Positions 8,508-49,178 are shown, counted from the stretch's first letter. The stretch: 64,000 bases of DNA from Prasinococcaceae sp. CCMP 1430 (GCA_013416795.1 RQSC01000011.1:236721-300720); one strand, 5' to 3'. The notes: a model not told the origin generated them from the letters alone. Translations and numbers: made by a program.

Positions 8508-10921
8508 ATGCGGCGCGCGGCGCAGCCGCGCCTCCTCGCGGCCGCCGCGCTCGCGGCGGCCGCGCTCGCCGCCGCTGCGTGGGCGCCCACGCGCGTGGCC
8601 GCTGACGGCAACGCGCAGCTTGAGGCTATCATGGATGAGATGGAACGCATGACCATCGAGCTTAGAGACGAAGTGGAGAAGCAGTACGCGCGGCGATGCG
8701 CGCTCTCCGCCAACTCGTGCAAGGAGGCAGCCTACGAAGGCTGCGTGACCTCGTACACGGACCAGGCCGAGTGCTCGGCTGACTACATCAAAATTGGCGA
8801 GTGCGGCAGCTGCGGCGCTGTGTTTGACTTCACCACCTCGAACGTGCGCATCCCAAAGGCGTACATGAGCAACGGGCCCGGCTCGAGCCCAGACACGCCC
8901 AGCTTGAAGGAGACGGTGTGCTACACGAACGCAATCACCGACTTTATGGTGCGCCAGGCCGAAGAGGTGAAGGCGGGCTCCGTCTTCCAAGAGATACCTC
9001 AGACTTACTTCGGCGCGCACAATGGCCTGTTCCGCTTTTACCCCGCGCGCCAGACGGGAGTGTGCGGTGGCTACGACCCGCGGGTGCGCCCGTGGTTCAC
9101 GGCGGCGTCCAGCGGGCCCAAAGACGTCGTCCTTGTGCTTGACATTTCCGGCTCCATGCACTTTCAGAACAGGTGGTCCCTCGCCAAGCAGGCTGCCATC
9201 GCGGTGCTCAATTCGCTTTCAATCGCAGACCACTTCGGCGTGGTGCTCTTCAGTACGGACGCCAAAATGCTCTCGGGCAGTTCGAGGAGGTCGAGGATGC
9301 AGCTCGCGACGGAGGAGAACGTCAAGAACGCCATCGATGCCCTCGAAAGAGTGACTGTGGGGGGCTCAACCAACTTTCTCGCCGCCTTTAGGCTTGCCTT
9401 CGACGTGCTCGACCACTCAGTCGAGCAGGAGAGCACGTCACGGTGCCACACCGCCGTGCTCTTCCTCACGGACGGTGAGATGACCTATCCCGAGGACGCC
9501 AACGTAGAGGACGTGTACGACCTGGTCTTGTCCCGCAACGCCGAGCACGGTGCCACGCTCTTCACCTACTCGCTGGGAAATGGCGCGGACCGCGTGGTCC
9601 CCAAGAACCTGGCATGCAGCACGGGCGGCATCTGGTCGCCGATTCCGGATGGCGACAACCTCGCCGCGTACATGTCAGCTTACTACAAGCTCTTCGCCAT
9701 CGGCCTCGGCGGCGAAGAGAACAAGGACTTCGTCGCGTGGGTCGAGCCGTACCTTTACGAATCGGGGGAGGACTACGGCACCACAACCTCGGCGCCTGTG
9801 TACGACCGCTCGGTGAGCCCGCCAATCTGGCTAGGCGTCGTGGGGGTCGACTTCACTGTGGGCGCCATGACGCGCGTGGTGGGCGGCTCGGACGCCTACA
9901 GCGTGGTCCTGCAGAAACTGGTCGACACCTCCGTGGCTCGCTGCCCGGCTCTCACCGACACCGATCTCCCCTGCCTCATCGAGAGCCTGCGCAGGGAGGT
10001 GGGCGCGGAATCCTCGTGCAACACGGACAATTGTGCCACAAGCATGCGCACGGAGCCTGAGACGGTGCGCATCGCGCGCTCTCCTTCTGCGCGCACACTG
10101 CTCGCTTCACTCCGCTGCGCGAGTGTTGCGCCCAGCTGACACGCCAGCGCACCCCCCTCGCGCGCGTCGCTCATCCTGCGCCCAATAGTGCGGCGGCGAC
10201 GAGCACTATCCGGTGAACCTTTGGGTGAACCAGGACTTCAAGGACGTCGGCTTTCATGCAATCAAGCCCTACAAGGAGCGCACATGCTGCGGCTTGGGCA
10301 AGGAGGAGGACGCTGAGTTTGGTGGCGGGGCGGGCACATGTGGTAGGCTGGAAGCCGCGGGTATTTCTGACACGGTCGTCTACGTGGTCGCCGCTGTCGG
10401 CGTCGTCGTCGTCTGCATTACCATCTACTCCCTTATGACTCGGTCCCGAAGGAAACGCCGCGAGGCGGTCGCCCAGGCAGGGGCTGGTCCTCCGCAGCAG
10501 CAGGTGCAGGTACGCCCTCGCGCTCAAGCGCCCAGGCGCAGGAAGGCGAAAGGCTCCGAGTGCACTGGATTTGCAAGCGCGTGCCTGAGCTTTCTACAGC
10601 TGACACGTGCCTGTGCGACGCCACGCCACAACAACGCGCGATTCAATCAATCCGCGCACCAAGCAGCCCGGATTCTATCCCTCGACAAGCGCACCCGCTG
10701 CGCCAACCAACGTGCAAATGTCTCATCTTGCGCCCGCCCCGACCGTCTATCTAGGCGCAGGAGCCTCGCAAACCCAGGGCGTCACATACGTCCCCGCCCC
10801 CGCGGTTGCGTCTGACCAGCCATACGGGACCGAGCCAGTCGTGGCCGTCCCGGTGGCGCAGATGCCTGACCCATCGCAGACGTACGCGGCCTCGGCGCCG
10901 ATGAAGCCAGAATATCAGTAG
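8508..10921 (+). CDS. Secreted/single-pass VWA-domain protein, alpha2delta (CACNA2D/CACHD1)-like
   Basis: Signal peptide, YDPRVRPWF..A.SGPKDVVLVLDISGSM (MIDAS DxSxS), LFLTDG, FTYSLG and a Cache-like W.EPY...GVVGVD, then a TM and a Pro/Tyr tail. Exons 8508-10064, 10189-10509 and about 10667-10921. Confidence 0.8.
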
Positions 10922-26437: not shown

Positions 26438-27797
26438 TCATTCGAACGTCCTGTCTGGGAAGACGACGGGAGCGAGCAGGCTCCACATGTACAGGAGGCC
26501 GCCCAACCATCCCGACACTACCTGCACCCACATCGCTGCCCAGCCGTCCTGTATGGAGAGCACCCCCTGCGTGGTGCCTAGCTGCCAGCTGAGCAGCAGC
26601 ATGGAGCCGTACATGGAGCTCAGGACCAGCGCGAAGTTAGAGAATGCGTAGGAGTACTGTGGGCGATCGTCCTCGAGGACGCCCTTGGCGACGTCGTCGC
26701 TGCCGCTTTCCTTGCTCACCCTGAACGCGTCGCGGCGCCCGCCGGCCGTGAACGCCGACACGAAAACGGTCCCAAAGGCTATGACAAACGAGACTACCTC
26801 GCTCCACCCCACGGTGCGCTCGCCGTCCTCGTTTGTGTCCTTGAGCGTGTTGCATCGGTAGGCGTCGGGCTCGGCCCCGAGCGCCGAGACAGTCAGGAAT
26901 GCCATGTACGCGAACACGCACGCACTAGTGAAGAGCCCGGCGTGCTCAATTTGCGCCTTCAGCGATAGAAACACGTGCACGGCGCCGAACAGCAGACAGA
27001 TGGACACGATGCCGATGTTGAGGGAGCACGAGCCCGATGGTGCGAACACGTGAAAGGCGAAGCCCACGAGCGCCAGGCCAGCGCCGTAGGTGATGAAGGT
27101 GCCCAGAGGCAGCAGAAAGCGTCCAGCGCCTTCCCACACGTCCTCTCTGAGCATCCAATCGTTGATGTTGTACACGGTAGCCAAAAGGATGATCCATTGG
27201 AACATCAGGAAGGCACCACCACCGACGCGCGCAAGCTGGCCATACGCATTCGCCGCGTCTGCGGACACCCCGAACACGCTCGCGCAGACCGTGCCGACGA
27301 GCACAATCACCTTCGCGAGCCACCAGCCGTTGTGCAACCGTCCACGCCACGACGTAACGTCGCTCACGCGAAAGGTGAGCATCGTCAGCGCGGCGAAGAA
27401 GATGCTCGCGCCGAAGGACACGCGCAGCACCATCTCCGCAGCGTGGCACTCAGCTGCGGCATCGCCCTCCAAACTCCCGCACTCGGCCTGCAGGGCCGGG
27501 CTGGCATTCACCTGCGCGTGCGCGCGTGCGTCGGCGCGCCGGGGTCAGAGTATGAACGTGCGTGTGGGCGAGCGCGCGAGCGCGAGCGCGAGCGGCTCGC
27601 GCACTCACCAGTCTCGCGTCCAGATAATCCCGCGCGAGCCATTGCAGTACGAGCGTGAGCGCGAGGAGCACTGTGTGGCCCAGCCGCGCGCCGCGCCCGC
27701 GCCCGCCACCACGCGTGCCTGCCCCACGCATGCTACCAGTCTCGATGTCTCCGGCCTCGCGCCGCGGCGGCGGGCCCGCAGGCTCGATCTCCACCAT
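26438..27797 (-). CDS. SERINC: Serine incorporator (Serinc/TMS) family membrane protein
   Basis: LRVSF, RLHNGWWLAK, QYSYAFSNFALVLSSMYGSMLL and YMWSLLAPVVFPDRTF. Exons 27797-27609 and 27511-26438. Confidence 0.9.
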
Positions 27798-28547: not shown

Positions 28548-30074
28548 ATGGCGCGGAGCACGGGGGGCGCCCGCACGGTAGCGTTGGCGGCGGCCGCGGC
28601 CATGCTCGGTGTGCTGTGCGGTGTCGGGCACATCGCGTCTGCCGCACCCGCCGCATCCGCTGCACCTGATGCTTTGCCCGCGGAGGTCGCAGGAGTCTTG
28701 GTGCCGCCAGCGAGATTCGAGGAGCTCGTGCTGGGCGCGTATGCGGCAGCGCTGGTGGTGTTCGCGCCCTTCTCGTCCGACGCCCAGGCCGACAGCGCGC
28801 CCGCACCGTCTTGCGCGACGCTCGGTGTGTCGCTCACGCGGCTCGCGCTCAGTGCGACACGCGGTCGCGCGCTCATTGCGGCCGTCGATACGACCGGCGC
28901 GGGCGGCGCAGCCGATGCGGCACGCTTTGCGCCCGCCGCTGTTGCCGAGTGCGCAGGCCTGGTGCACTTCGCTCTGGGCGACGACAAGGCCGCACGCGGT
29001 GGCGAAGTGTACGACCACGCCGCCGCCGGCGTTGCGAGCGGCGGCGAGCACGTCGCGCGCCTCGTTGGCTGGATGGCGGCGCGAGCGCCGGACGTGCTCG
29101 CCCTGCGCGCCGGGGACGAGACTTTCGATTGGCTGAAGCGCGCTGACGGCGCGGGTGGCGTCGCCTCGACGCTCCAGGCTGACCGCGCGGGCGGGGCGGA
29201 AGAGGGCGAGGCCGAGCTCGCTACACTCGATGAGACTCACGTCCCCAAGGTGCTCGCACTCGTCGATGGTGTGGGCGAGGCGGGCGCCGGGCCTAACGTC
29301 CGGCTCGCGGCGGGCGCATTTGCGCCATGGCTCGAGTTTGCCTTCGTCGATGTGGGCGCCGACGAGGACCTCGAGGCGGTGAGGGCTCTTGGCGGGCCAC
29401 TGGGGAAAGCACGCCGCGGTGACGTCTTCGCGACATTCGTCGGTGATGGCCGCGTGCACTTCATGAGGGGGCCGGACGGTGCTGCGCTGCACAGCGCTGG
29501 AATGCAGGCGGACGGCAGCGAGCCGGGCGACGACTGGGGCAAGCTCTTCTATTTCCTGCGCCAGGTCGGCGCCAAGCTCGGGCTGCCCCCGCCCGGCGGG
29601 CCTGGCACAGCGCAGGCTTTCATGGAGTCGCAGGCGGGTGGCAAAGCCGAGCTTGGGGAGGTGGTGACGCTGAGGGACCTCAAGGCGATCTGTGGCAGAG
29701 CGGGCGATGTGTGCGTCCTCGCTATCATCGGGCCGAAGCAATTCGACGAGAGCGGGAAGTGCACGCCAGCGCTCGCTACTACGCTCCTCGACGTGGCCGC
29801 CCGCCGCGGGGGCGCCGCAATAGGCTACGCATTCGTCGATGCCAAGAGGAGCGCGCCACGGCTCCCGGGACAGCTCGGCGTCGATATGTACGAGGACCTG
29901 CCGAGAGTGCTCGCAATGCGCCTCGACTCGGGCGAGTACGCGCTCAGCGAGTCCTACGAACCCGCCCATATCATGGCCGCCATCGACCGCGCGGCGGCGC
30001 GGCGGGCGCTCGAGAAGTTTATAGGCGGCATGCCCGACTTCCGCATCGGCGCTGTGCACGAGGACGAGCTGTGA
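28548..30074 (+). CDS. ER-luminal thioredoxin-fold-like protein with C-terminal EDEL
   Basis: Signal peptide after ATG 28548, FAFVDV/YAFVDA thioredoxin-like strands, no CxxC, ends HEDEL*. Confidence 0.6.
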   Translation: MARSTGGARTVALAAAAAMLGVLCGVGHIASAAPAASAAPDALPAEVAGVLVPPARFEELVLGAYAAALVVFAPFSSDAQADSAPAPSCATLGVSLTRLALSATRGRALIAAVDTTGAGGAADAARFAPAAVAECAGLVHFALGDDKAARGGEVYDHAAAGVASGGEHVARLVGWMAARAPDVLALRAGDETFDWLKRADGAGGVASTLQADRAGGAEEGEAELATLDETHVPKVLALVDGVGEAGAGPNVRLAAGAFAPWLEFAFVDVGADEDLEAVRALGGPLGKARRGDVFATFVGDGRVHFMRGPDGAALHSAGMQADGSEPGDDWGKLFYFLRQVGAKLGLPPPGGPGTAQAFMESQAGGKAELGEVVTLRDLKAICGRAGDVCVLAIIGPKQFDESGKCTPALATTLLDVAARRGGAAIGYAFVDAKRSAPRLPGQLGVDMYEDLPRVLAMRLDSGEYALSESYEPAHIMAAIDRAAARRALEKFIGGMPDFRIGAVHEDEL

Positions 30075-30132: not shown

Positions 30133-33100
30133 TCACTGTGCAAAGGTGCAGTACTTGACCTGTCGAGTTGTGTGGAGTGGGTGTGTCGAGGGGTAGGGAG
30201 GAGAAGGGTGTCAGCGCGCGCGCGCGCACTTGCGCGGCCGACCCCAGCGCGGCGCGGGGCGACGCACCTGGGTGTAAGAGCCGTCGTTGGTACCCACCGA
30301 GTGCTGGTTGTAGTGCACCGCCCAGTCGCCGCCGCTCTGCACTGAGCAGCCCGGCAGCACCCAGCTCCAGGAGGCTGGGCCCACCAGCGAGCCGCGCGAT
30401 GCGGTCACCTTGGAGCCGAACATGGCCTTGGCGGCGTCGAAGCAGTCCGCCTGGGTCACTACCATCGCTGAGGTCTTGCCCGAGGGGCAGTAGCAGCCGG
30501 CCTGTCCGGCACACGATGGAGGGGGCGCGCCAACCGTTGAGGACGTGTCGAATGCGCAGTAGCGGTACTCGTTGGCGTAGCCGCCCGGGAAGTTGGCATC
30601 AGTGCAGTCCACGCCCCACTCGTCGTTCTCGCCAATGCCGGCAGGGGCCTGGAAGCTCTTGTACACCCAACCGAATCTGTGATAGCCCGTGTAGTCCATG
30701 GTCCGCGGTCCCCGGCCCATGCGCATGCTCACCTCGCTCACCCGGCCCTTAAATGTGCAGCGCGTCTGCACCGAGGGCATGCCGTACTGGTTGATGCTCG
30801 CGCAGTGCTCCCACTTGGGGCCCTCAGTGTCGATGTACACGCTGGAGTGATCGAGGTTGCCACACTTCTGCCATGAGTCGCCCAAACAGTCCCACGAACA
30901 CGAGTGGTCTGCGCTGAGCCCGTGAACGAACGCCGGGTCCTCCTCATAGCACTCGCACCACTGGCCCTGCAGGACGCCAAAATACTGGAAATTGCCCCTG
31001 GCGCGGCAGTGGCTCAGGCAGAGCTCGGGGTGCAAGTTGCTGTAGTGGGTCACCTCGCGCCCGAGCGCGTAGTGCTGGCCGCCCTCATCATGGTGGCGGC
31101 GTATGCATCCCCGGTATTCGTAGGCCTTGGCGGCGAGCTTGTTGGCGGTGGTGGCCTTGATGCGGCAGCAAAGGAAGTTGTCGATGTTGCTGAGCATCGC
31201 ACCCGAGCCCTTGCGCTCGAGGCCAGCCATGAAGGGATACTCCTTCGGGCACGTCGACCAGCCTTCGGAGTCGAACGCCTGCGAATTGTCGATCCACATG
31301 CACTCCATGGCGGCGGCCACCTTGACGCAGTGCCAGAATTCGAGGCGATGGATTGACTCGCCCTTGTTCGTGTAGATGCCGCGCATGACGTAGCCCTGGT
31401 GGATGTCGCAGTACATCTGCGTGGCCTTGTCGAAGCAATTCTTGTGGTCGTTCTCGTTGGCCCAGCGCCCCTTTCTCGAGCAGTAGTTCCACGTGTTGTG
31501 TCCTAGCACCTTGCCCACATTCGTACACAGGTATTTGTCCAGGTAGCGAATGTTGCGGCCGTTGGTCCTGTAGAAGCCGCTGAGCACCCAGCCGTTCCAC
31601 CCATGCTCGCACATCCAGTCGCCCCTCTGATCGGCAAAGTTGTACGTGTGGTCGACGACCTTGGTCTCAAGGCCGCCCAGGCGCGGCTTCATTCCGGGCC
31701 AAGTGGCGGACTTGTCTCCCGCACAGTAGAAGTAGTCCCAGCAATAGGTGTTGTGACAGGAAGTCTGGTAGATTCCTTGCAGGTACGGCATGTCGTACGG
31801 GCAGCCGTGCCAGCCGCCAGTCACGTCCGAGAAGCGCTCGATCACGGCCGCCTTGCGCGTCCAAGCGAAGTCGCGGTGAGTCACGCGCGCGCACCACACG
31901 GCCTCGATGCAGTATGTGTGCGGGCAGTTGCTGGCGGTGTTTCGCGTCAGGTTCTTGATGGCGTACCCGTCGGGGCAGTGAGTCCAGTAGTGAGTTTGGT
32001 CCAGGGTCCACCACGAATTTGAGATGTAGATCAGGTCCTGCTGCGCGCTGCCGCCCCAGGGGTTGATGGAGCTGCCAAAATTCCAGTGCGCAGCGTTCTC
32101 CTCGCCGTTGGCGTTGGTCTCGGCCATGCGCTGAAAGGAGGGCACATCGACGCACATCACGGACGACAGCTGCGTGATGTATCCGCCTCCTCGCCAGTAG
32201 CCCGACATGACGCTACCCTGCGGACAGTTGATGCCTCCACCAACGCCCCAGTGTGGCCACATCCTCGTCTGGCCGGAGGCCATGTTGCCCCATACCTCGG
32301 TGATCGGCTGCTCGCCCCACACGCTCGCCACCGATGAGACGGTCACCTCCTTGCCGCGGCTCATCACCTTGGGGCCGTACTTCATGATGCGCGAGCTGAA
32401 GACCGACGCGCAAACGATGAGCGCTCCCACAGAGATCTCTGCGTCGACGAAGACCGTGTACGTGTTGACGGGCTCGCAAGTGTACCGAATGCATGGCCAC
32501 ACGTCGATCGCGTCCTCTCCCCACTGGCGACACGTCTCCGCACACTTGGCCTTCTCGCATTCGCGCTCCATCATCATGTCGAATTGGATGGCGGCGATCA
32601 GGTCCACCTGAGGGCCGGCGTTACAGGTGCCCAACGTGACGGTGAGCTCACCCTTGATATAGGACTGCCAGCAATTGCGCCCGCCGTTGTACGGGTACGT
32701 TTTCAATACGAAGCCGTAGTAGATGCAAAACTGGAGGAAGGTGTAGCTCACGAAATCGGAGAATTTGCCACAAATCTTCTTGGAGCAGCCCACGGAGAAG
32801 GAAACGCAGCCGCTCACCTCAAGGCCGCTCCCGTTCGGGTTGTAGTCGATGCTCAGCGAGCCTTCGATCGTCACGCCGTAGACGTCCACCTCCGCGCTCA
32901 CGCCGAGAGCGCAGAATTTGGGATCTGAGTACGCCAACCCGAATATGCCGAGGTTGATGCCGATGAGCGTCGTGTCGGAGCAGTAGCTGAAGGACTGGCC
33001 ATATGAGATACCGATCATGAACGGAATGCCGTCGTCGTCGTCGGCCCTGCTGCTCGACTTCTTCTGCGCGAGCAGACTGCGCTCGCGAGCAGACGTTGCG

Positions 33101-36075
33101 GATGCCGCCAGCGAGCGACGAGCGTCTGAAGATTCGAGTCCATCGCCTTCGCCACTGTTGCCCAGCAACACCACCCTGCCCGCGCCTCCGGCGTAATATT
33201 CAGCCATGGAGCGGTCGAAGGCGTCCAACGCGGACACCTGCTCGGCCTCGTCACGGAGCTCGATGGCTGCCAGGCCGCGCGCGATTGTAGCCTCGGCTGC
33301 GGCGTCCAGCTTTCGCATGGCATCGTCCAGCGCCTCCTTGCCGAAGGCGTCGACGGCAAACTCGTGCGCGCCCTCGGGCATTGCAGCGCCGGCAAGATGG
33401 CGCAATGGCGGCCCGCCCTTGGGCACGAGCGGCACGAGGCCACCCGAATGGAGGCGCCGTCGCATCGCGTCCGAGGCGCCACTCGTGCCAACCCCACCGT
33501 CGCTCTGGCCGTCGTCCGCGTCAGCACCTGCGTCGCCGCCGTCCTCGCCCTGCTCGACCTCTTCGGCATCCGGGTCGTAGCCCGCCCAGTCAATTACCAT
33601 GCGATCCAGGACATCTGCACCGTAGACCCTCTTGACCCACGTGCGGAAGCCCGCCTCGCTGAGGAAGGAGCCCTTAAACTCGTTCATGAGCGCGCCGTGA
33701 GAGACGTAGATGTCGCTCGCAAACGGCGAGAGGTTGTGGATCTCGAACACGTTGCGGTGCAGCACGGCCTCCTTGCTGACAGCGGGGTCGGTGCAGTCGT
33801 CGGGCCACTCACTGAAGAGCCCGGTTGCGCGCACCGCCACAGGGTCGTACTCGTGGTGCGCCTCGAAGAGGTCGTACACGGCGAAGAAGTCCTGATCCTG
33901 ATAGCGCACCGTCGCCTTCACGGGCACGCGTGGGGAGGCCGGGTCGGCCGGATCGAGCGCCCGGTCGAACAGGCGCACATCTGCGCCCACGTCATCGAGC
34001 GTGTCGCCGCGCATGAGGAACTCGCGCGCGGCGACGCCGCCCGCTGCCTCGGCGAGGAAGACGTCGCCATTGTACACGCCGGTCACGTTGAAAGCGGTTG
34101 AGGCGTTGAGGCCCATGTCTGCGAACGTGCCGTTGCCGCACGACAAAGCACCGCCCGCAAGGCCGCGCGGCATGCGGATGCCACGGTAGTTGTCCATGAC
34201 GTTGTCCTGCTCCCGGGCCTTCTCTAGGCTGTTGGGGTCGTCATCCCTGAGCAGCTCCAGCTGCCTCTCGAACGGCGTTGGGTCGTCGCCTGGTGGCACG
34301 CCCGTGGTGGCGTTCGGGTCGATGCCCTGGGCTTCGTAGGCGTACGGATCGGCCGAGGGAATCGCAGTGAGCTCGTAGAGGTCAAAGAGGTTGATGAAGG
34401 TCGCATTTCCCATGGTATCAGTGCCGTTGCTCACGCGGCCATCTGATCTGAGCGAGATCTCGACCTCGGAGGCGTCCAGCCCCAGCTCCAGGCCAATGGC
34501 GCGCGCGCCGTCGATGGCGGCGCCGGTGCGATTGCGCTCCACATCGGCCGCCATGCGCACGCCGGACGCCTCGAGCCGTTCCATGAAGTAGTCCTCAGGC
34601 GTGTCGTCGATCTGGAAGAAGCGCTTGCGCTCGGACACATGAGCGGAGGGATCGGTATCGTTGACGATGTAGACCACGCGCATGTGGGGCGCGCGCACGG
34701 GGTAGCGGTACTCCTCGCGGCTCAGTGGACCATCCATCCACATCTCGCCTTCAACCCAGGTGTAGGTGTGGCCAGCCTGCACCATCTTGTAGCCGTCGTA
34801 CTCCGCGCCACACACGCTGAGCTTGCCTGCGTCGGGCTCGTCGCCGTTCTCGTCGGTCTCGATGCACTCGGCGTCACCTGGAGAGCGCGGCGGTGGAGGG
34901 TTTGCGGGGTCATAGCAGCGGTAGTAGAGGCGAAAGACGGTGTGGAACTGATCTGGGAAGCCCGGCTGCTCCTCTCCGGCCTCGAGTCCCTCCCAGTTGT
35001 CGATCGCATTGAAAAATCCCACCATTTCGTACATGCCAGTGAGGCGACGGCGGCTGAAGTCGACGGTGAACCCCGCGCGCTCGAAGATCTCCATGGAATC
35101 CGCCGACTTGAAGCTCAGTACCTCGTCCTCGATCTCTACCTGGCCCGCGGCTGTGAGCAGCACCACAGTCGAGTCGGTTCCCTTGCAGCCGCGCGGAAGG
35201 CGCGTCCACCCCTGCACCATGAGCACCAGGCGCGCCCCGGTGCCGCTGCGCACGTCCAGCTCCTTGAGTTCCTCGAAGGCGCTGTCGGGCAGGCGGCTGG
35301 TCAGGCGCGACGCGCGCAGCGGCGCGGCTGCCGTCGCTAGCACGCTGCCATCCGCCGCGGAGGTCATCACCGCCGTGTCGCCACCGCCTAAGACCAGAGT
35401 CCCGCCGTCGGCGTCGAGCAACCCGCGCTGGCGGCGCGCAGAGGCGGAGGACGGCTGGAGCTCATACTCTTGGGCGGCCGTCTTGACCGTCTGGGTGCTG
35501 TCTGCGGCGCTGACCATGGCGCCGTCCTCTGCGACCTTGCTCTCCTTGCTCAGTTCAACGACGGCGAAGGTGAGCCCCGCGATGGCCCCCAGCGTGAGGC
35601 CCATGAGCAAGAGGAGGACGCCAGCAAGCCGAACGAGCTTCTTTGCCTTGTTCTTCTCGCTCTCGTAAAGCTCCGCAGCACGCACCATCTCCAGCGAGCC
35701 GATGGTGCCGTCGCCGTCGCTGTCGAAGACGGCGAGCTTCTCCTGCACGGCGCGCGGGAATATGTCGATAGGCACTTTGTCATCTGACTTCATCTGCTCG
35801 TAGAGAGTAATGGCCTGCCAGAGCTCCTCGGACTCGACGACGCCGTCGCCGCTCTTGTCGAGATGCGCGAGGTCCGTTCGAATCTTCTCCGGCAGGTGTG
35901 AAAGCACCAGGTGGTCCTGCCTGCCTTTTCGCATGTCCTCGAACATCGCCGCCGCCTCCTCGAGCTCGCTCGCTTCCACCACGCCATCGGCGTCCAGGTC
36001 GAAGCGCGACAGCAGCTTGCGCTGGTCCGCCCTCAGGGAGTCCAAGCGGATGCCCTCCTTCCGACCCTTACCCAT
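30133..36075 (-). CDS. Giant type II membrane protein: 3 EF-hands, TM, Cys-rich repeats, WSC and other lectin-like modules
   Basis: EF loops DLDADGVVEASE, DKSGDGVVESEE and DSDGDGTIGSLE; TM LAGVLLLLMGLTLGAIAGLTFAVV; six Cys repeats; WSC YRGC..LC..C..YFGV..G.WC.C. Exon 36075-30268, intron 30267-30160, last exon 30159-30133. Confidence 0.85.
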
Positions 36076-36878
36076 GGCGAACTACTTCGGTCGTCGCCGG
36101 GGTGCGCGCGCTCCGTGTACCGGGGGTGGCACATGCGGTGGCAATCGCGGGAAGGAGGCGATAAGCAAGGGGAGGAATTGTGGTGGGGGGGGGGTGGGGG
36201 GGTGGGGGAGGGAGGGAGCAGAGCATTGTCTGCCACCGTCAGCACATTGGTGCTGCGCGGCGTGCGCCCATGCGCGTTCGCGCTGGATCGAGACGCGAGG
36301 CGATGCGAGCTTTGCCCTTGAGCGCTCGCTCCCTCGGCGCGTTCATCTCACCGTGTGCTGCGGCGGCGACACGCGCTGGCGGCGGGCACAGCCCGCTGCC
36401 GGAACGGTCCCGCGGGGGATTCCCCGGGGCCGCGCACGGGCGCTGCGCACGCGCTGTGGCGCACAGCCGGCCCGCCGCCCATCGCCCCCTCCCCCCTGCT
36501 CGCCGCGCGCCATTACGGTTGCGATGGCCCCGGGTGGTTGGGACGACCCGCTGTTTCTGTGGGGAACCGATGTGTAGACCCCATCGGACCGTCGTTTCGG
36601 CATGCGCACTGTGCTCAAAATGATCATTTCGTCGTGAGGGCGCGGTTTCTTTTCCGCTCGTTCCCCCGTTCGCGTTCCCCGGCCGGGGCGCGGCGCGGCG
36701 CAGCACGGTGCGCCGCGGCGCCGTGGCCACTCGCCTCGCTCCCACCCGCCGCGCGTGTGTGTCCGCCAGCGAAGCGCGCGCCCGCGCGCTGTCGCTCGCT
36801 CGCGCGCGCATCGACAGAGCGCGTCGACCGAGCGCGTCGACCGAGCCTCCGCCCCGGAACGAAGGGCGAGGCGGGTAG

Positions 36879-38180: not shown

Positions 38181-39173
38181 CTACGGAGCCGCCGCCACGC
38201 ACGGGTTGGGCCCGAACGCCTCAAAGCGCATGTCGAGTTTGATCTGGGCATCCTGGACGATGCTGTCAACCACCCCGATTGCGATGGCGGGCATGTCGAT
38301 CGCGACGCTGTCGAAGATGGCCTCCAGCGGGATGGAGATCTCCTCGTCGCTGATGTATCGCAGCTGTCGCTTGCCCGCGCCGCCGATGAAGGGCATCGCC
38401 AAGAGCTCGGGCTTGCCCTCCTCGTGAGAGCCACCCATGGCGATCGGAAGAGGCGTGGTGCTGTCGAAGACCAACCCGAGTGTGGTGTTGTCGTTGCTCA
38501 CGTTGATGGCACCACCCTTGGCCCACAAGCGGAGCTGTTGCTCCACCGGGTTGAGCCCAGCCAGCGTTGCCGCGGAGGGACCCTCGAAGCCTCCACCGTG
38601 CGGGGGCAGCGGCTTGCCTAGCGGCGCGAACGCCTCCTCCTGGGCGCGCACGCCAAACACGGCGTCGGCGACCGCCAGCCGCGCGGCGCGCACTGGCCGG
38701 TCCAGAAAGGCGTCGGTGAAGATCTCTGCGCGCCAGCCACTCGGCGCGCCAGTGTCCTCGAACAACATGCGCAGGTCCGAGTCGAGGTGGTACGCTCCGT
38801 CGAAGCCGCCCATGGTGTCGGTGCAGCGCAAAACGAGGTGGATGCGTCCCTGTTTGGCGAAGTCGAAGGGTTCGACGCCCTCGAGCGTCACTTCGTCGCT
38901 GCCGACGAGCTCCACGCGCGAGCAGCCGACTGGCGCCACGAAGCCGCTCCTGCTTGCGTCGGTTGCGTTGGGGCCGCAGGCGGAATCGGTTTTCAAGTCG
39001 AGCGTGGCGAGGGCCGCATACTTGCCTTCTGCGGCGGCGAGCGCGGCGAGCGCCGCGGGCACCGAGGGGGGTGGCTGCAAGACCAGTGGCGCATCTCCGT
39101 CCGCCTTCGTGCCGGGCGGCAGCAGCGCCGCCATTGCAGCAGACGCCGCCAGCGCCAATAATCTGAGTCTCAT
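38181..39173 (-). CDS. Secreted hypothetical protein (330 aa)
   Basis: MRLRLLALAASAAMAALLP signal peptide and globular composition. No family recognised. Confidence 0.65.
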   Translation of the reverse strand: MRLRLLALAASAAMAALLPPGTKADGDAPLVLQPPPSVPAALAALAAAEGKYAALATLDLKTDSACGPNATDASRSGFVAPVGCSRVELVGSDEVTLEGVEPFDFAKQGRIHLVLRCTDTMGGFDGAYHLDSDLRMLFEDTGAPSGWRAEIFTDAFLDRPVRAARLAVADAVFGVRAQEEAFAPLGKPLPPHGGGFEGPSAATLAGLNPVEQQLRLWAKGGAINVSNDNTTLGLVFDSTTPLPIAMGGSHEEGKPELLAMPFIGGAGKRQLRYISDEEISIPLEAIFDSVAIDMPAIAIGVVDSIVQDAQIKLDMRFEAFGPNPCVAAAP

Positions 39174-39432
39174 GGTGGCCGCCGGCGGCTGGTTAGGCCG
39201 CTGTCTGCGATAGCGGCACAGGCGAAGCGTGAGGGCGCGGCGGACGGGCCGCTCTGGGCTTCGACGGGATGGGCGTATGCTCGCGCCGCGTGCGGACTGC
39301 GCGCCGTGTGGCGCGCGCGGCGGCACGCCGCCCGCATCCGTGGCGCCGCCCGCAATTTCTCGCGCCGATCTGCTCGTTCCCGCCCAAACTTGACGCGCAC
39401 AATTCCCCAAAACTGGCAACAGCTACTGTACC

Positions 39433-39941: not shown

Positions 39942-41303
39942 TTACTCCGTTCGCAACGCCGCTGGCGCAGCGATGGGCAGTGGACCGAACGCCGCCCCCC
40001 TCGTCCTGCCCCTGCCTACCAGCAACGCCTCGTCTCCTGCGCCATAATAGTCCGCCGGCAGTCCCACCGCATCGACCAGCTCGCCCGAGCGCGAGAGACT
40101 CAACGAGCGCCCCACGGTCGGGACTAGCACAGGCGGCACGTCGTGGCGCGGGGCCTCGCTAGCCGCCTGGACGTCGGAGACGAGCACCCGACCGCCAAGG
40201 CGCAAGAAATCGAGCCGCAGTGCACAGCGTAGCCACCAGCTGAGCGCGCCGAGCCCAGCTCGCGTGCGGTGCTCCTCGTAAGCTTCGTCTCGCCCGGCGC
40301 CCGTGACGCGCAAGGTCGCGGTGCCATCGGCATCCGCGACCGCCCTCTCGAAGAATCCCCAGACCGCAACCGTCTCCCCAGCGAGGAGTACCTCCTCTAC
40401 AAACCACGACGTACCTGCGCGTTGCCAGACGTCGATCGCCCGCTCGCTGTGCTCTTCCTCCCAATGGTCGGCGCGCAGGAGGAACTCCCGGAAGCACAGG
40501 GGCCACCGGCCCGTGTCGCTGTGATCAGGCGAGGCAGCACCTGCCTCGCTGTCGATGCGGTAGGCGTCCTCGCCGCGCTCGAGCAGCTGGCCGAGCGCAA
40601 GCGACACCGGCGCGCCTGAGCCGTCGTCCACCACGCCGTCAACGCCCGCCTCCTCACTCGCGAGGCAGTCGGTCACAGTGCGCTTGCCGCTGCGCCGCGA
40701 GCGAAAGCACGAGGCGCGGTACCACACGCACTTCCGCCCCGTGAGGGCCGACAGCAGGTGCGCTGCGGCCGGCTCCAATTTTCCGACGACGCGCCCCATC
40801 ACTGCCTCAGCGGGGCTCGCTCGCACGACCTCGGCGAGCGCAGCAGCCTTGCTGGCGCGCGTGCCGCGCATCAGCCGCCGCTGCGCTGCGTCTGGCCGGC
40901 AGAAACACCACATCACGCAGGCGCAGATCGTCAACAAGGGCACCGTCCCGAACACTCCGAAAAAGATCAAGCCCAACGTGACGTCCGACATTGTCGTGAC
41001 CGGCGGCGCGGGCGGCCCGGGCGGCGAGGGGGGCGGTACAGGCGGCGAAGGCGGCGCGGGCGGCGGAAGTGGCGGAAGCATCGATGGTGGCCGCGCTTGC
41101 TCGTTCTCAACGCCACCGCCGCCTATGTCTCGCGCCCCACCGACAGCCGCGCCAACACATATGATGGCGACGAGCGCGCCAAAGATGAGGAGCGCTCGCC
41201 ACCGTCGCAGGCAGGCCCGCCACCCCGTGGCCCTGCGCCGACCTTCAAAGTATGGCGACGGAGAGGTCACGGTGGCTCCGATGCTGTCGTTGCTCTCGAA
41301 GCC

Positions 41304-41349
<46 letters not shown>

Positions 41350-41471
41350 TCCTCGTTTGAGGACGACGTGCTGCTGTTTGCAGACGCGCTCTCGGAGTTG
41401 CTCCTCGCAACATAGCTGCTTGGCGCGCCGCCCGCCTCGACGTCTCCATGCGCCACTTCAGGCGCTCGCAT
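39942..41471 (-). CDS. Membrane protein with poly-Ser, Pro-rich linker, two TMs and a GIDE (MUL1-like) domain
   Basis: LLSALTGRKCVWY..VVDDGSG..EEVLLAGETVAVWG resembles GIDE. No RING domain seen. Confidence 0.55.
41305..41346. repeat. (CTG)14 microsatellite encoding poly-Ser on minus strand
   Basis: Counted directly. Confidence 0.95.
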
Positions 41472-41869
41472 CTGTCGCCTCGCGCGCTCGCCACGCGTGA
41501 ATGCCCCTGGCAAGGACACGCACGCCCCTTGGCCGTGGCTCGGCGCGGCACGGCGCGGCGCAGCGCGGCGACGTAGCGCGCCGCGGCGTGGCGCGCAGCC
41601 GTCGTGCGCCCGCACGCCCTCTCCCGACACTCAGTCGCTCTCACTCGCAGCTCTCGCGATGTTCTAGGCCCGCCCCTCTGCCTCCCACCGCCCATCGCCT
41701 CCGCGCACACACCACGAGGAGTGGTCAGCACAGTGTCGACCGCCCCTCCCGTGCCGAAACGCGCATCTCGGGTGGGGGAACTCGGCAACTGTTCCGAATA
41801 AAGTTGCACGCGCGCTGCGTCTTAGTCTTCGAGAATGGAGGAGTCCAGTGACTAGCATGGAGACATAAG

Positions 41870-48123: not shown

Positions 48124-49178
48124 CGCGGCGCGCGCCCGCGCGGCGGCGGCGGCCGCCGCCGCNNNNNNNNNNNNNNNNNNNNNNNNNNNNNNNNNNNNNN
48201 NNNNNNNNNNNNNNNNNNNNNNNNNNNNNNNNNNNNNNNNNNNNNNNNNNNNNNNNNNNNNNNNNNNNNNNNNNNNNNNNNNNNNNNNNNNNNNNNNNNN
48301 NNNNNNNNNNNNNNNNNNNNNNNNNNNNNNNNNNNNNNNNNNNNNNNNNNNNNNNNNNNNNNNNNNNNNNNNNNNNNNNNNNNNNNNNNNNNNNNNNNNN
48401 NNNNNNNNNNNNNNNNNNNNNNNNNNNNNNNNNNNNNNNNNNNNNNNNNNNNNNNNNNNNNNNNNNNNNNNNNNNNNNNNNNNNNNNNNNNNNNNNNNNN
48501 NNNNNNNNNNNNNNNNNNNNNNNNNNNNNNNNNNNNNNNNNNNNNNNNNNNNNNNNNNNNNNNNNNNNNNNNNNNNNNNNNNNNNNNNNNNNNNNNNNNN
48601 NNNNNNNNNNNNNNNNNNNNNNNNNNNNNNNNNNNNNNNNNNNNNNNNNNNNNNNNNNNNNNNNNNNNNNNNNNNNNNNNNNNNNNNNNNNNNNNNNNNN
48701 NNNNNNNNNNNNNNNNNNNNNNNNNNNNNNNNNNNNNNNNNNNNNNNNNNNNNNNNNNNNNNNNNNNNNNNNNNNNNNNNNNNNNNNNNNNNNNNNNNNN
48801 NNNNNNNNNNNNNNNNNNNNNNNNNNNNNNNNNNNNNNNNNNNNNNNNNNNNNNNNNNNNNNNNNNNNNNNNNNNNNNNNNNNNNNNNNNNNNNNNNNNN
48901 NNNNNNNNNNNNNNNNNNNNNNNNNNNNNNNNNNNNNNNNNNNNNNNNNNNNNNNNNNNNNNNNNNNNNNNNNNNNNNNNNNNNNNNNNNNNNNNNNNNN
49001 NNNNNNNNNNNNNNNNNNNNNNNNNNNNNNNNNNNNNNNNNNNNNNNCTTGGTGCACCACACACGCACGCCACCGCGCGCGCGCGCAGGCGAGGCACGCG
49101 CAAGCCGCGGGAGCGGCAGCAGGCGCGGCAGGCGAGGGCGCCCCGCGCGGTCCGAGGGAGCTCTTGCAGGCGTTCGCC

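Follow-up and report, generated by a model that had tools for sequence, protein, structure and literature searches.

A single long gene occupies positions 30133-36075 on the minus strand of the 64,000-nucleotide stretch of Prasinococcaceae sp. CCMP 1430 DNA analysed here (RQSC01000011.1:236721-300720, the window). It has two exons, and its spliced product is 1944 amino acids (aa) long. This product is a predicted type II membrane glycoprotein of an apparently undescribed green-algal family, and the reading that we favour, with modest confidence, is that it acts as a glycan-binding protein of the surface or wall that is coupled to calcium and possibly cleaved. Three EF-hands precede the only membrane helix, and about 1770 residues follow it, with a WSC domain near the far end. 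The initial annotation had proposed a calcium-linked surface apparatus. This proposal was supported in part: the architecture, the predicted cytosolic EF-hands and the large disulfide-rich ectodomain agreed with our results, whereas the calcium coupling and the surface location are what we infer.

The raw open reading frame (ORF) covers 1954 codons, from the ATG at 36075 to a TGA at 30211. This in-frame TGA sits inside a 108-nt GT..AG intron, which follows the last residues of exon 1 (...SYTQ). After splicing, the 1944-aa product was identical at every residue to the EukProt EP00793 entry PRCOL_00004389-RA of Prasinoderma coloniale; the gene already exists as an unnamed model in the published genome. 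An ortholog of 1956 aa (P0002, 73% identical) was found as one uninterrupted ORF on six marine metagenome contigs. It runs continuously from ...SYTR into VKYCTFNL, ending in ...SYTRVKYCTFNL. The intronless end of the ortholog and the identity to the public gene model are two independent results, and together they confirm the splice model. Two expectations of the initial annotation, that this is one gene ending at 30133 and that it is almost free of introns, thus held. The intron lies eight codons before the stop in P. coloniale and is missing at that place in the related metagenomic species (contig L001, around position 9200), and was therefore gained or lost recently. A near-identical copy of the gene (P0001, 99% identical) was also present on contigs from other sequencing runs. 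A word-based homolog search with the whole protein returned this copy and the one ortholog only, and a scan of JGI metagenomes confirmed no further ortholog. The gene is therefore assigned to P. coloniale, and the G+C content of the window, about 68%, is in line with the value published for this alga, 69.8% (PMC7455551). A pyrimidine- and C-rich tract (ctccctccc...cccacc) was noted on the minus strand at 36165-36220, about 90-145 nt upstream of the ATG.

The coding sequence was compared with that of the ortholog by the Nei-Gojobori method. The overall dN/dS was 0.27, and all segments stayed below 1 (0.12-0.60, Table 1). The ortholog retained all 57 of the 57 exon-1 cysteines and 10 of the 11 N-x-S/T sequons, and the domain order was likewise conserved. 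The constraint on the protein and the preserved cysteines and sequons rule out that the ORF is fortuitous or that unrelated genes have been fused.

The N-terminal domain carries three canonical EF-hands. An EF-hand was recognised by a hidden Markov model (HMM) score above the gathering score for PF00036, PF13202, PF13405 or PF13499, together with a helix-flanked 12-residue loop in which position 1 is D, positions 3 and 5 are D, N or S, position 6 is G, position 8 is hydrophobic and position 12 is E. The protein showed these features. Pfam matched EF-hand_1, _5, _6 and _7, of which EF-hand_5, _1 and _6 exceeded their cutoffs, and NCBIfam, which returned EF-hand families only for this protein, matched the XopAW-type EF-hand. 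The loops read DLDADGVVEASE, DKSGDGVVESEE and DSDGDGTIGSLE. All were retained in the ortholog, with diverged flanks. In the loop nearest the membrane, D118 was invariant among 58 family sequences, and G123 and E129 were at least 90% conserved. The odd number of EF-hands suggests that the domain may dimerise; a homodimer prediction for residues 1-149, made for this reason, scored 0.00, which is evidence neither way.

The only convincing hydrophobic helix spans residues ~150-173. It is preceded by a basic patch, KNKAKKLVR, and followed by an acidic stretch, ELSKESKVAED. No cysteine occurs before the helix, and 58 occur after it. From the charges flanking the helix, the distribution of the cysteines and the sequons, the N-terminus is predicted to be cytosolic and the C-terminal ectodomain of about 1770 aa to lie outside, as in a type II single-pass glycoprotein. 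A second membrane span at the hydrophobic peak of residues 1207-1226 was considered and rejected. This peak contains D and E and lies within a conserved Cys-rich β domain, and a span there would leave the WSC domain and at least 30 cysteines in the cytosol. The three EF-hands, the single helix behind them and a far side of roughly 1780 aa had all been proposed from the first inspection of the DNA, and our results agree with each, as they do with the predicted series of a long region of no known kind, an acidic linker, a β-rich segment, six Cys repeats, a WSC domain and two Cys modules.

The arrangement of EF-hand, helix and ELSKE motif was not confined to this protein. When 1.84 billion representative proteins were searched exhaustively by HMMER with residues 240-1240, 164 protein clusters were retrieved. 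Each matched only residues ~243-395, which we call domain X, and the matching part usually lay 100-300 residues from the N-terminus. About 75 of the proteins fetched (the 164 cluster representatives and cluster members of close relatives) also matched residues 56-175, the part that carries EF-hand, helix and ELSKE. Profile iteration lengthened the common ectodomain core to about residue 510. The helix preceded domain X in 97 of the 103 members with enough upstream sequence, and the last EF loop stayed at a fixed distance of about 20 residues from it. Across the family, 35 cysteines were counted before the helix and 1390 after it. The shared cassette can thus be given as one to three EF-hands on the predicted cytosolic side, the helix, the motif AVVELSKE and an ectodomain core of about 275 aa, all of which the present protein has. 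The members with a named source belong to Cymbomonas, Pycnococcus, Pseudoscourfieldia, Gonium, Astrephomene and a pedinophyte, and P. coloniale has a second family gene, PRCOL_00006270. Their source labels are "hypothetical", "EF-hand domain-containing" or "calmodulin". The sole named member filed outside the green algae is P0065 (NCBI CAE7727119, "Symbiodinium sp. KB8"), on a 4.1-kb contig; its place in a dinoflagellate assembly could be due to contamination or gene transfer.

These results change the picture given by the initial annotation. The protein is not unique, as the cassette occurs in at least 164 green-algal clusters, including a paralog in the same genome. A search for proteins that join EF-hand, helix and ELSKE had been recommended, and it did lead to relatives across the green algae. 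The statement that no characterised protein of this kind was known stood, as no characterised relative was found here either. Our literature search for type II proteins of algae with EF-hand, WSC or VOMI domains also found nothing relevant, and neither the family nor its core domain nor the RRRL motif discussed below appears to have been described.

The C-terminal heads of the family varied. A Pfam scan of 52 long members found VOMI in five, WSC in three, and ricin-B, PAN and CUB in one each. Because all the head domains found are carbohydrate- or ligand-binding modules, the family combines a constant anchor with exchangeable lectin-type heads.

In the protein studied here, the ectodomain begins with a 60-aa stalk, followed by the core, a glycosylated region, the β-rich domain, six repeats, the WSC domain and two Cys modules. 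Within the core, R-R-L-x-G at residues 343-347 was nearly invariant. AlphaFold2 (AF2) gave a confident model of domain X, with a predicted local distance difference test (pLDDT) value of 85 from a 138-row alignment, and the model had no convincing structural relative: the best Foldseek match in the PDB had E 0.05, and the best VIA match had Z 4.9 against that tool's stated noise level of Z 7-8. The Atlas structure search returned the family itself only, the profile search of PDB sequences was blank, and Pfam has no model for the domain. Structure prediction with a Foldseek search had been proposed as a check on the protein, and it thus worked for domain X, with no fold match. It did not work for residues 1013-1650, where AF2 on an 8-row alignment reached a pLDDT of 32, unusable for a fold search.

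Nine N-x-S/T sequons are found at residues 472-781, the first of which, N472, belongs to the adjoining part of the family core. An acidic linker lies at ~836-866, and a DDDD motif at 1011-1014. For residues 511-1012, the ortholog was the only relative found by HMMER, local searches and Atlas. The β-rich domain was otherwise found only in the metagenomic family member P0019, and had no match in Pfam or the PDB, PDB profile searches included. Word-based searching with residues 1000-1936 gave no match, PDB profile searches with the β domain, the β and repeat region and the C-terminal modules were blank, and ESM Atlas feature searches with residues 1241-1650, 1746-1936 and 400-850 returned nothing usable. 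The C-terminal modules matched nothing in Pfam, the PDB or Atlas. When all unassigned pieces of the protein and its ortholog were searched in Pfam at E up to 10, a single match at chance level appeared.

The WSC domain was the clearest part of the head. WSC membership (PF01822) was tested by an HMM score above the gathering score and the presence of eight conserved cysteines. The match covered profile positions 1-81 of 82, and the eight cysteines were at residues 1657, 1686, 1690, 1707, 1709, 1726, 1730 and 1738. The Kremen WSC domain was matched in the PDB search.

The six Cys repeats follow the consensus W..CP.G.v.G..R..G..I..ID.F.C. Each unit scored 1e-14 to 1e-23 against the unit profile; these scores are circular because the profile was built from the same units. 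Units 1-3 and units 4-6 aligned in register, an indication that a triplet has been duplicated. Two such units were found in family member P0030 (E 5e-6), and a word-based search with the triplet alignment found no match. Two known domains were considered in comparison. VOMI (PF03762) is of interest since paralogs carry true VOMI domains at the equivalent C-terminal position. The repeats share with VOMI the front half W..CP.G..i.G, also seen in the true VOMI domain of a paralog, the terminal cysteine and the arrangement in threes. A member should match the Pfam HMM and show the signature GDDTA.N in all three of its units. The repeats gave no Pfam match at E up to 10 and lack this signature (DDTA.N), hhalign against the paralog VOMI gave a probability of ~1%, and in a shuffle test only one of the four VOMI domains compared gave a significant result; VOMI was therefore rejected. 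The second candidate was the APC-β domain of apicomplexan perforin-like proteins (PDB 7PLN; TgPLP1), a prism of three disulfide-locked β repeats (bioRxiv 10.1101/2021.12.16.473088). The only match of the unit profile in the PDB was 7PLN, the APC-β domain of Plasmodium vivax PLP1, with a weak overall E of 0.0055. All three of its repeats were matched at the one motif CP.d..vL.GF. This match is borderline and short (~25 columns per repeat), whereas the units here have 55-67 aa. APC-β is further defined by β-sandwich repeats with two disulfides each, C-terminal to a MACPF domain, and Pfam found no MACPF domain in the protein. As a hypothesis, the six repeats may form two β-prism-like triplets.

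A candidate processing site separates the core from the Cys-rich head. The motif RRRL at residues 872-875 was invariant in the ortholog, in a surrounding stretch just 54% identical, and LRHL follows at residues 891-894. Exact RRRL occurred in 27 of 83 family tails, compared with a mean of 0.5 and a maximum of 3 in shuffled sequences, an enrichment of about 50-fold. Its usual place was 215-330 aa beyond domain X, within sequence of low complexity that is often glycosylated. The cysteine density is 1.3 per 100 aa before the motif and 4.4 after it. SBT6.1/S1P is a Golgi subtilase older than the plant-animal split that cuts pro-proteins and type II membrane proteins, with a preference for R-(R/K)-X-L (PMC7162652). 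A substrate is defined by R-(R/K)-X-L or R-(R/K)-L-X in its luminal part and by cleavage at this motif in the Golgi. Since RRRL fits R-(R/K)-X-L, a putative processing site between anchor and head is a reasonable inference. The likeness extends to the plant substrates of this protease, CLEL6 and the bZIP factors, which are pro-proteins or type II proteins cut in the Golgi at R-(R/K)-X-L (PMC7162652). Here too a predicted luminal motif lies in a variable low-complexity stretch, at a position conserved throughout the family, and divides a membrane-proximal part from a distal functional part. The difference is that the candidate RRRL is far from the membrane.

Table 1. Features of the gene and its product, with window positions and dN/dS against the ortholog
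Feature	Residues	Positions	Strand	dN/dS	Evidence
Exon 1, ATG at 36075	codons 1-1936	30268..36075	-		ORF reading; spliced product equals PRCOL_00004389-RA
Sole intron, 108 nt, gtgcgt...acag		30160..30267	-		Sequence; intronless ortholog; spliced out in public gene model
Exon 2, VKYCTFAQ and stop, supplies 58th Cys		30133..30159 (27 nt)	-		Sequence, ortholog, public gene model
N-terminal domain, predicted cytosolic, without Cys	1-149	35629..36075	-	0.60 (EF-hand region)	Pfam, NCBIfam, ortholog comparison
EF-hand loop 1	26-37	35965-36000	-
EF-hand loop 2	73-84	35824-35859	-
EF-hand loop 3	118-129	35689-35724	-
Single transmembrane helix (predicted)	~150-173	35557..35628	-	0.23 (with ELSKE)	Hydropathy scan; fixed EF-loop spacing in family
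Juxtamembrane motif ELSKE, within AVVELSKE	174-178	35542..35556	-	0.23 (with helix)	Invariant in ortholog; recurs in family
Family-specific ectodomain core	236 to ~510	34546..35370	-		HMMER, profile iteration, AF2
Domain X, first part of core	236-400	34876-35370	-	0.19
Lineage-specific glycosylated region and linkers	511-1012	33040..34545	-	0.26 (middle region), 0.33 (linkers)	Sequon conservation; dN/dS
RRRL, candidate S1P/SBT6.1-type site between core and Cys-rich head	872-875	33451..33462	-
β-rich Cys domain, long amphipathic strand patterns	1013-1240	32356..33039	-	0.12	Most constrained segment
Six Cys repeats, two triplets (units 1254-1311, 1336-1398, 1399-1453, 1454-1520, 1521-1586, 1587-1640)	1254-1640	31156..32316	-	0.17	Unit alignment
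WSC domain, eight Cys	1654-1739	30859..31116	-	0.32	Pfam PF01822, E 2e-9, 38 bits vs cutoff 27.8
Two C-terminal Cys modules, completed by exon 2 (to 1944)	1746-1936	30268..30840	-	0.45	All Cys conserved in ortholog

These features suggest how the protein could work. The cassette would keep the head at the plasma membrane or in a secretory compartment, where the head might bind glycans on foreign surfaces or in the thick wall or matrix of the alga itself. P. coloniale does have a thick wall, of unknown chemistry (PMC7455551). Calcium bound at the membrane-proximal EF-hand might alter the partner binding, clustering or trafficking of the protein. RRRL could serve as a Golgi processing site, after which the head would be freed or still be held non-covalently.

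The closest working analogy is a WSC-type wall or surface sensor, or an adhesin, whose topology is inverted and whose kinase tail, or tail for binding a guanine nucleotide exchange factor, is replaced by one that binds calcium. The fungal sensors Wsc1-3 and Mid2, Kremen and polycystin-1 are likewise single-pass, with a Cys-rich WSC domain on a long glycosylated extracellular stalk, and polycystin signalling is tied to calcium, as we propose here. However, the fungal Wsc sensors are type I proteins that have the WSC domain at the N-terminus, a stalk rich in Ser/Thr and a short cytosolic tail for binding Rom2, whereas this protein is predicted to be type II, with its WSC domain at the distal C-terminal end. 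An EF-hand tail takes the place of the Rom2-binding tail or of a channel partner, WSC makes up little of the 1770-aa ectodomain, and the anchor cassette is unrelated. Membership of the fungal Wsc-type wall integrity sensors was thus rejected for its topology, distal WSC domain and EF-hand tail. STIM1-type sensors also place an EF-hand beside a single transmembrane helix and couple calcium to the behaviour of a membrane protein. STIM, in contrast, is type I and senses store calcium with luminal EF-hands, while the EF-hands here are predicted to be cytosolic, and there is no sequence relationship between the two.

Several results weigh against a calcium-coupled, glycan-binding and possibly cleaved surface protein. 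The EF-hand region showed the weakest constraint of all segments (dN/dS 0.60). About 1100 aa, residues 511-1650, contain no recognisable domain, and AF2 failed on residues 1013-1650; because of this, the function given to the head depends mainly on one WSC domain and on the analogy with paralogs. RRRL could be a structural or binding motif instead of a cleavage site, and the related R-R-L-x-G sits within the folded core. None of the public runs that contain the gene was an RNA run; they were DNA-like or of unknown kind. The genome paper gives transcript support for 6,996 of the 7,139 P. coloniale gene models (PMC7455551).

Toxin or defence action, intracellular sorting and ATF6-like proteolysis are less well supported than this reading. 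The one that survives best, although we regard it as rather unlikely, places the protein inside the secretory pathway. It would be held in the endoplasmic reticulum (ER), the Golgi or wall-forming vesicles, where its head would sort or assemble polysaccharides of the wall or matrix, and cytosolic calcium would govern vesicle traffic instead of surface sensing. The topology and the glycosylation fit a lumen equally well, and the synthesis genes of the thick P. coloniale wall are unknown (PMC7455551). In addition, a neighbouring gene encodes a protein with a signal-peptide-like start and the ending HEDEL, and its ortholog also adjoins the orthologous giant gene. However, this common neighbour may just reflect the close kinship of the two genomes, no retention signal was seen in the protein itself, and the great diversity of heads in the family resembles the recognition of varied external ligands more than housekeeping assembly.

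A bolder reading is calcium-gated release peculiar to green algae, in which cytosolic calcium, read by the EF-hand just before the helix, would control trafficking of the type II pro-proteins to an S1P-like protease throughout the family, and a cut at RRRL would free the interchangeable lectin heads into the wall or the medium. We regard this as unlikely, and slightly more so than retention in the secretory pathway. If true, it would couple calcium signals to remodelling of the cell surface, and the ectodomain core would be a new fold serving as a handle.

The initial annotation had also called the ectodomain toxin-like. Here the β-rich domain, with its long amphipathic hairpins, and the repeat triplets would be a membrane-binding or pore-forming unit against grazers, viruses or competitors, stored as a precursor anchored in the membrane until a calcium signal sets it free. 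The sole hint of such a unit is the weak match of the repeat profile to all three repeats of the PvPLP1 prism (E 0.0055), APC-β being the membrane-binding domain of that perforin-like protein (bioRxiv 10.1101/2021.12.16.473088). The two-by-three layout of the repeats is compatible with two prisms, the β-rich domain is under the strongest constraint, and the RRRL site could free the unit. On the other hand, the APC-β match was short and borderline, searches at E up to 10 found no MACPF, aerolysin, ETX/MTX2 or APT domain, and profile searches of the PDB with the β domain were blank. Moreover, β-prisms like the VOMI domains of the paralogs are of lectin type and not lytic. Biomphalysin and other aerolysin-like proteins were considered and rejected, as Pfam and PDB profiles gave no aerolysin, ETX/MTX2 or APT domain. 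The small lobes of biomphalysin are structurally variable and without a motif, and offer nothing defined for comparison (PMC8047071). The toxin-like character was thus unsupported, and we consider this explanation improbable.

Still less probable is regulated intramembrane proteolysis of the ATF6/bZIP28 kind, in which a luminal cut and then a cut in the helix would free the EF-hand domain as a cytosolic signal. ATF6 and bZIP28 are also type II proteins that S1P cuts in the lumen, and the predicted type II topology comes here with conserved luminal S1P-type motifs, namely RRRL at 872-875, R-R-L-x-G at 343-347 and, near the membrane, RRQRGLL at 214-220. However, the enriched motif RRRL is about 700 aa from the helix, far from leaving the short stub that an S2P-type cut requires. 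Neither a DNA-binding nor an enzymatic part is present in the cytosolic domain, and no helix-breaking motif came up in the membrane span, where none was specifically looked for. Finally, an annotation artefact, in which one ORF would run through several genes or a pseudogene, is very improbable: GC-rich DNA does yield long spurious ORFs on both strands here, and no RNA run contains the gene, but the 5.8-kb frame is preserved in another species at 73% protein identity with a dN/dS of 0.27 and all cysteines and the domain order conserved, and the published gene model agrees.

Prasinoderma is a member of a third phylum of green plants, and the biology of its wall and surface is essentially unknown. 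Against this background, the gene brings to light a family that is widespread in green algae, absent from Pfam and not found by us in the literature, and that links a predicted cytosolic calcium sensor to swappable glycan-binding heads through a conserved core and a candidate protease site. If the coupling is true, it would provide a testable route from calcium signals to surface recognition or wall assembly in algae, and a new domain family with which to annotate hundreds of proteins labelled "hypothetical" or "calmodulin".

The adjacent genes had been thought to form a system with the giant gene. The convergent downstream neighbour at 28698-30074 (plus strand) encodes the HEDEL protein, which has about 457 aa, an ER-retention-type ending and no match in Pfam or the PDB. 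Its ortholog, which ends in REEL, is also next to the giant gene's ortholog in L001, where it lies upstream of that gene and shares its strand. No other neighbour was common to the two loci. With only the HEDEL gene also adjacent in the ortholog, and in a different arrangement, a multi-gene system was not supported.

The remaining neighbours were noted in passing. A 357-aa ORF with many hydrophobic spans at 26438-27511 (minus strand) corresponds to a gene that received a Pfam Serinc assignment in contig L007, which is near-identical. On the same strand, a 412-aa ORF at 38181-39419 has a signal-peptide-like segment (MRLRLLALAASAAMAALL...) and was not found beside the ortholog; it may be the neighbour described as secreted in the initial annotation. 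A 562-aa ORF at 39942-41630 (minus strand) contains a poly-Ser run, encoded by a perfect (CTG)14 at 41305-41346, a proline-rich stretch and hydrophobic segments, and may be the repeat gene mentioned there. The G+C content falls to 0.000 over about 750 bases at 48250-48999, in a genome of 68% G+C; the most likely cause is a run of N, from an assembly gap or a masked stretch, and not biology.

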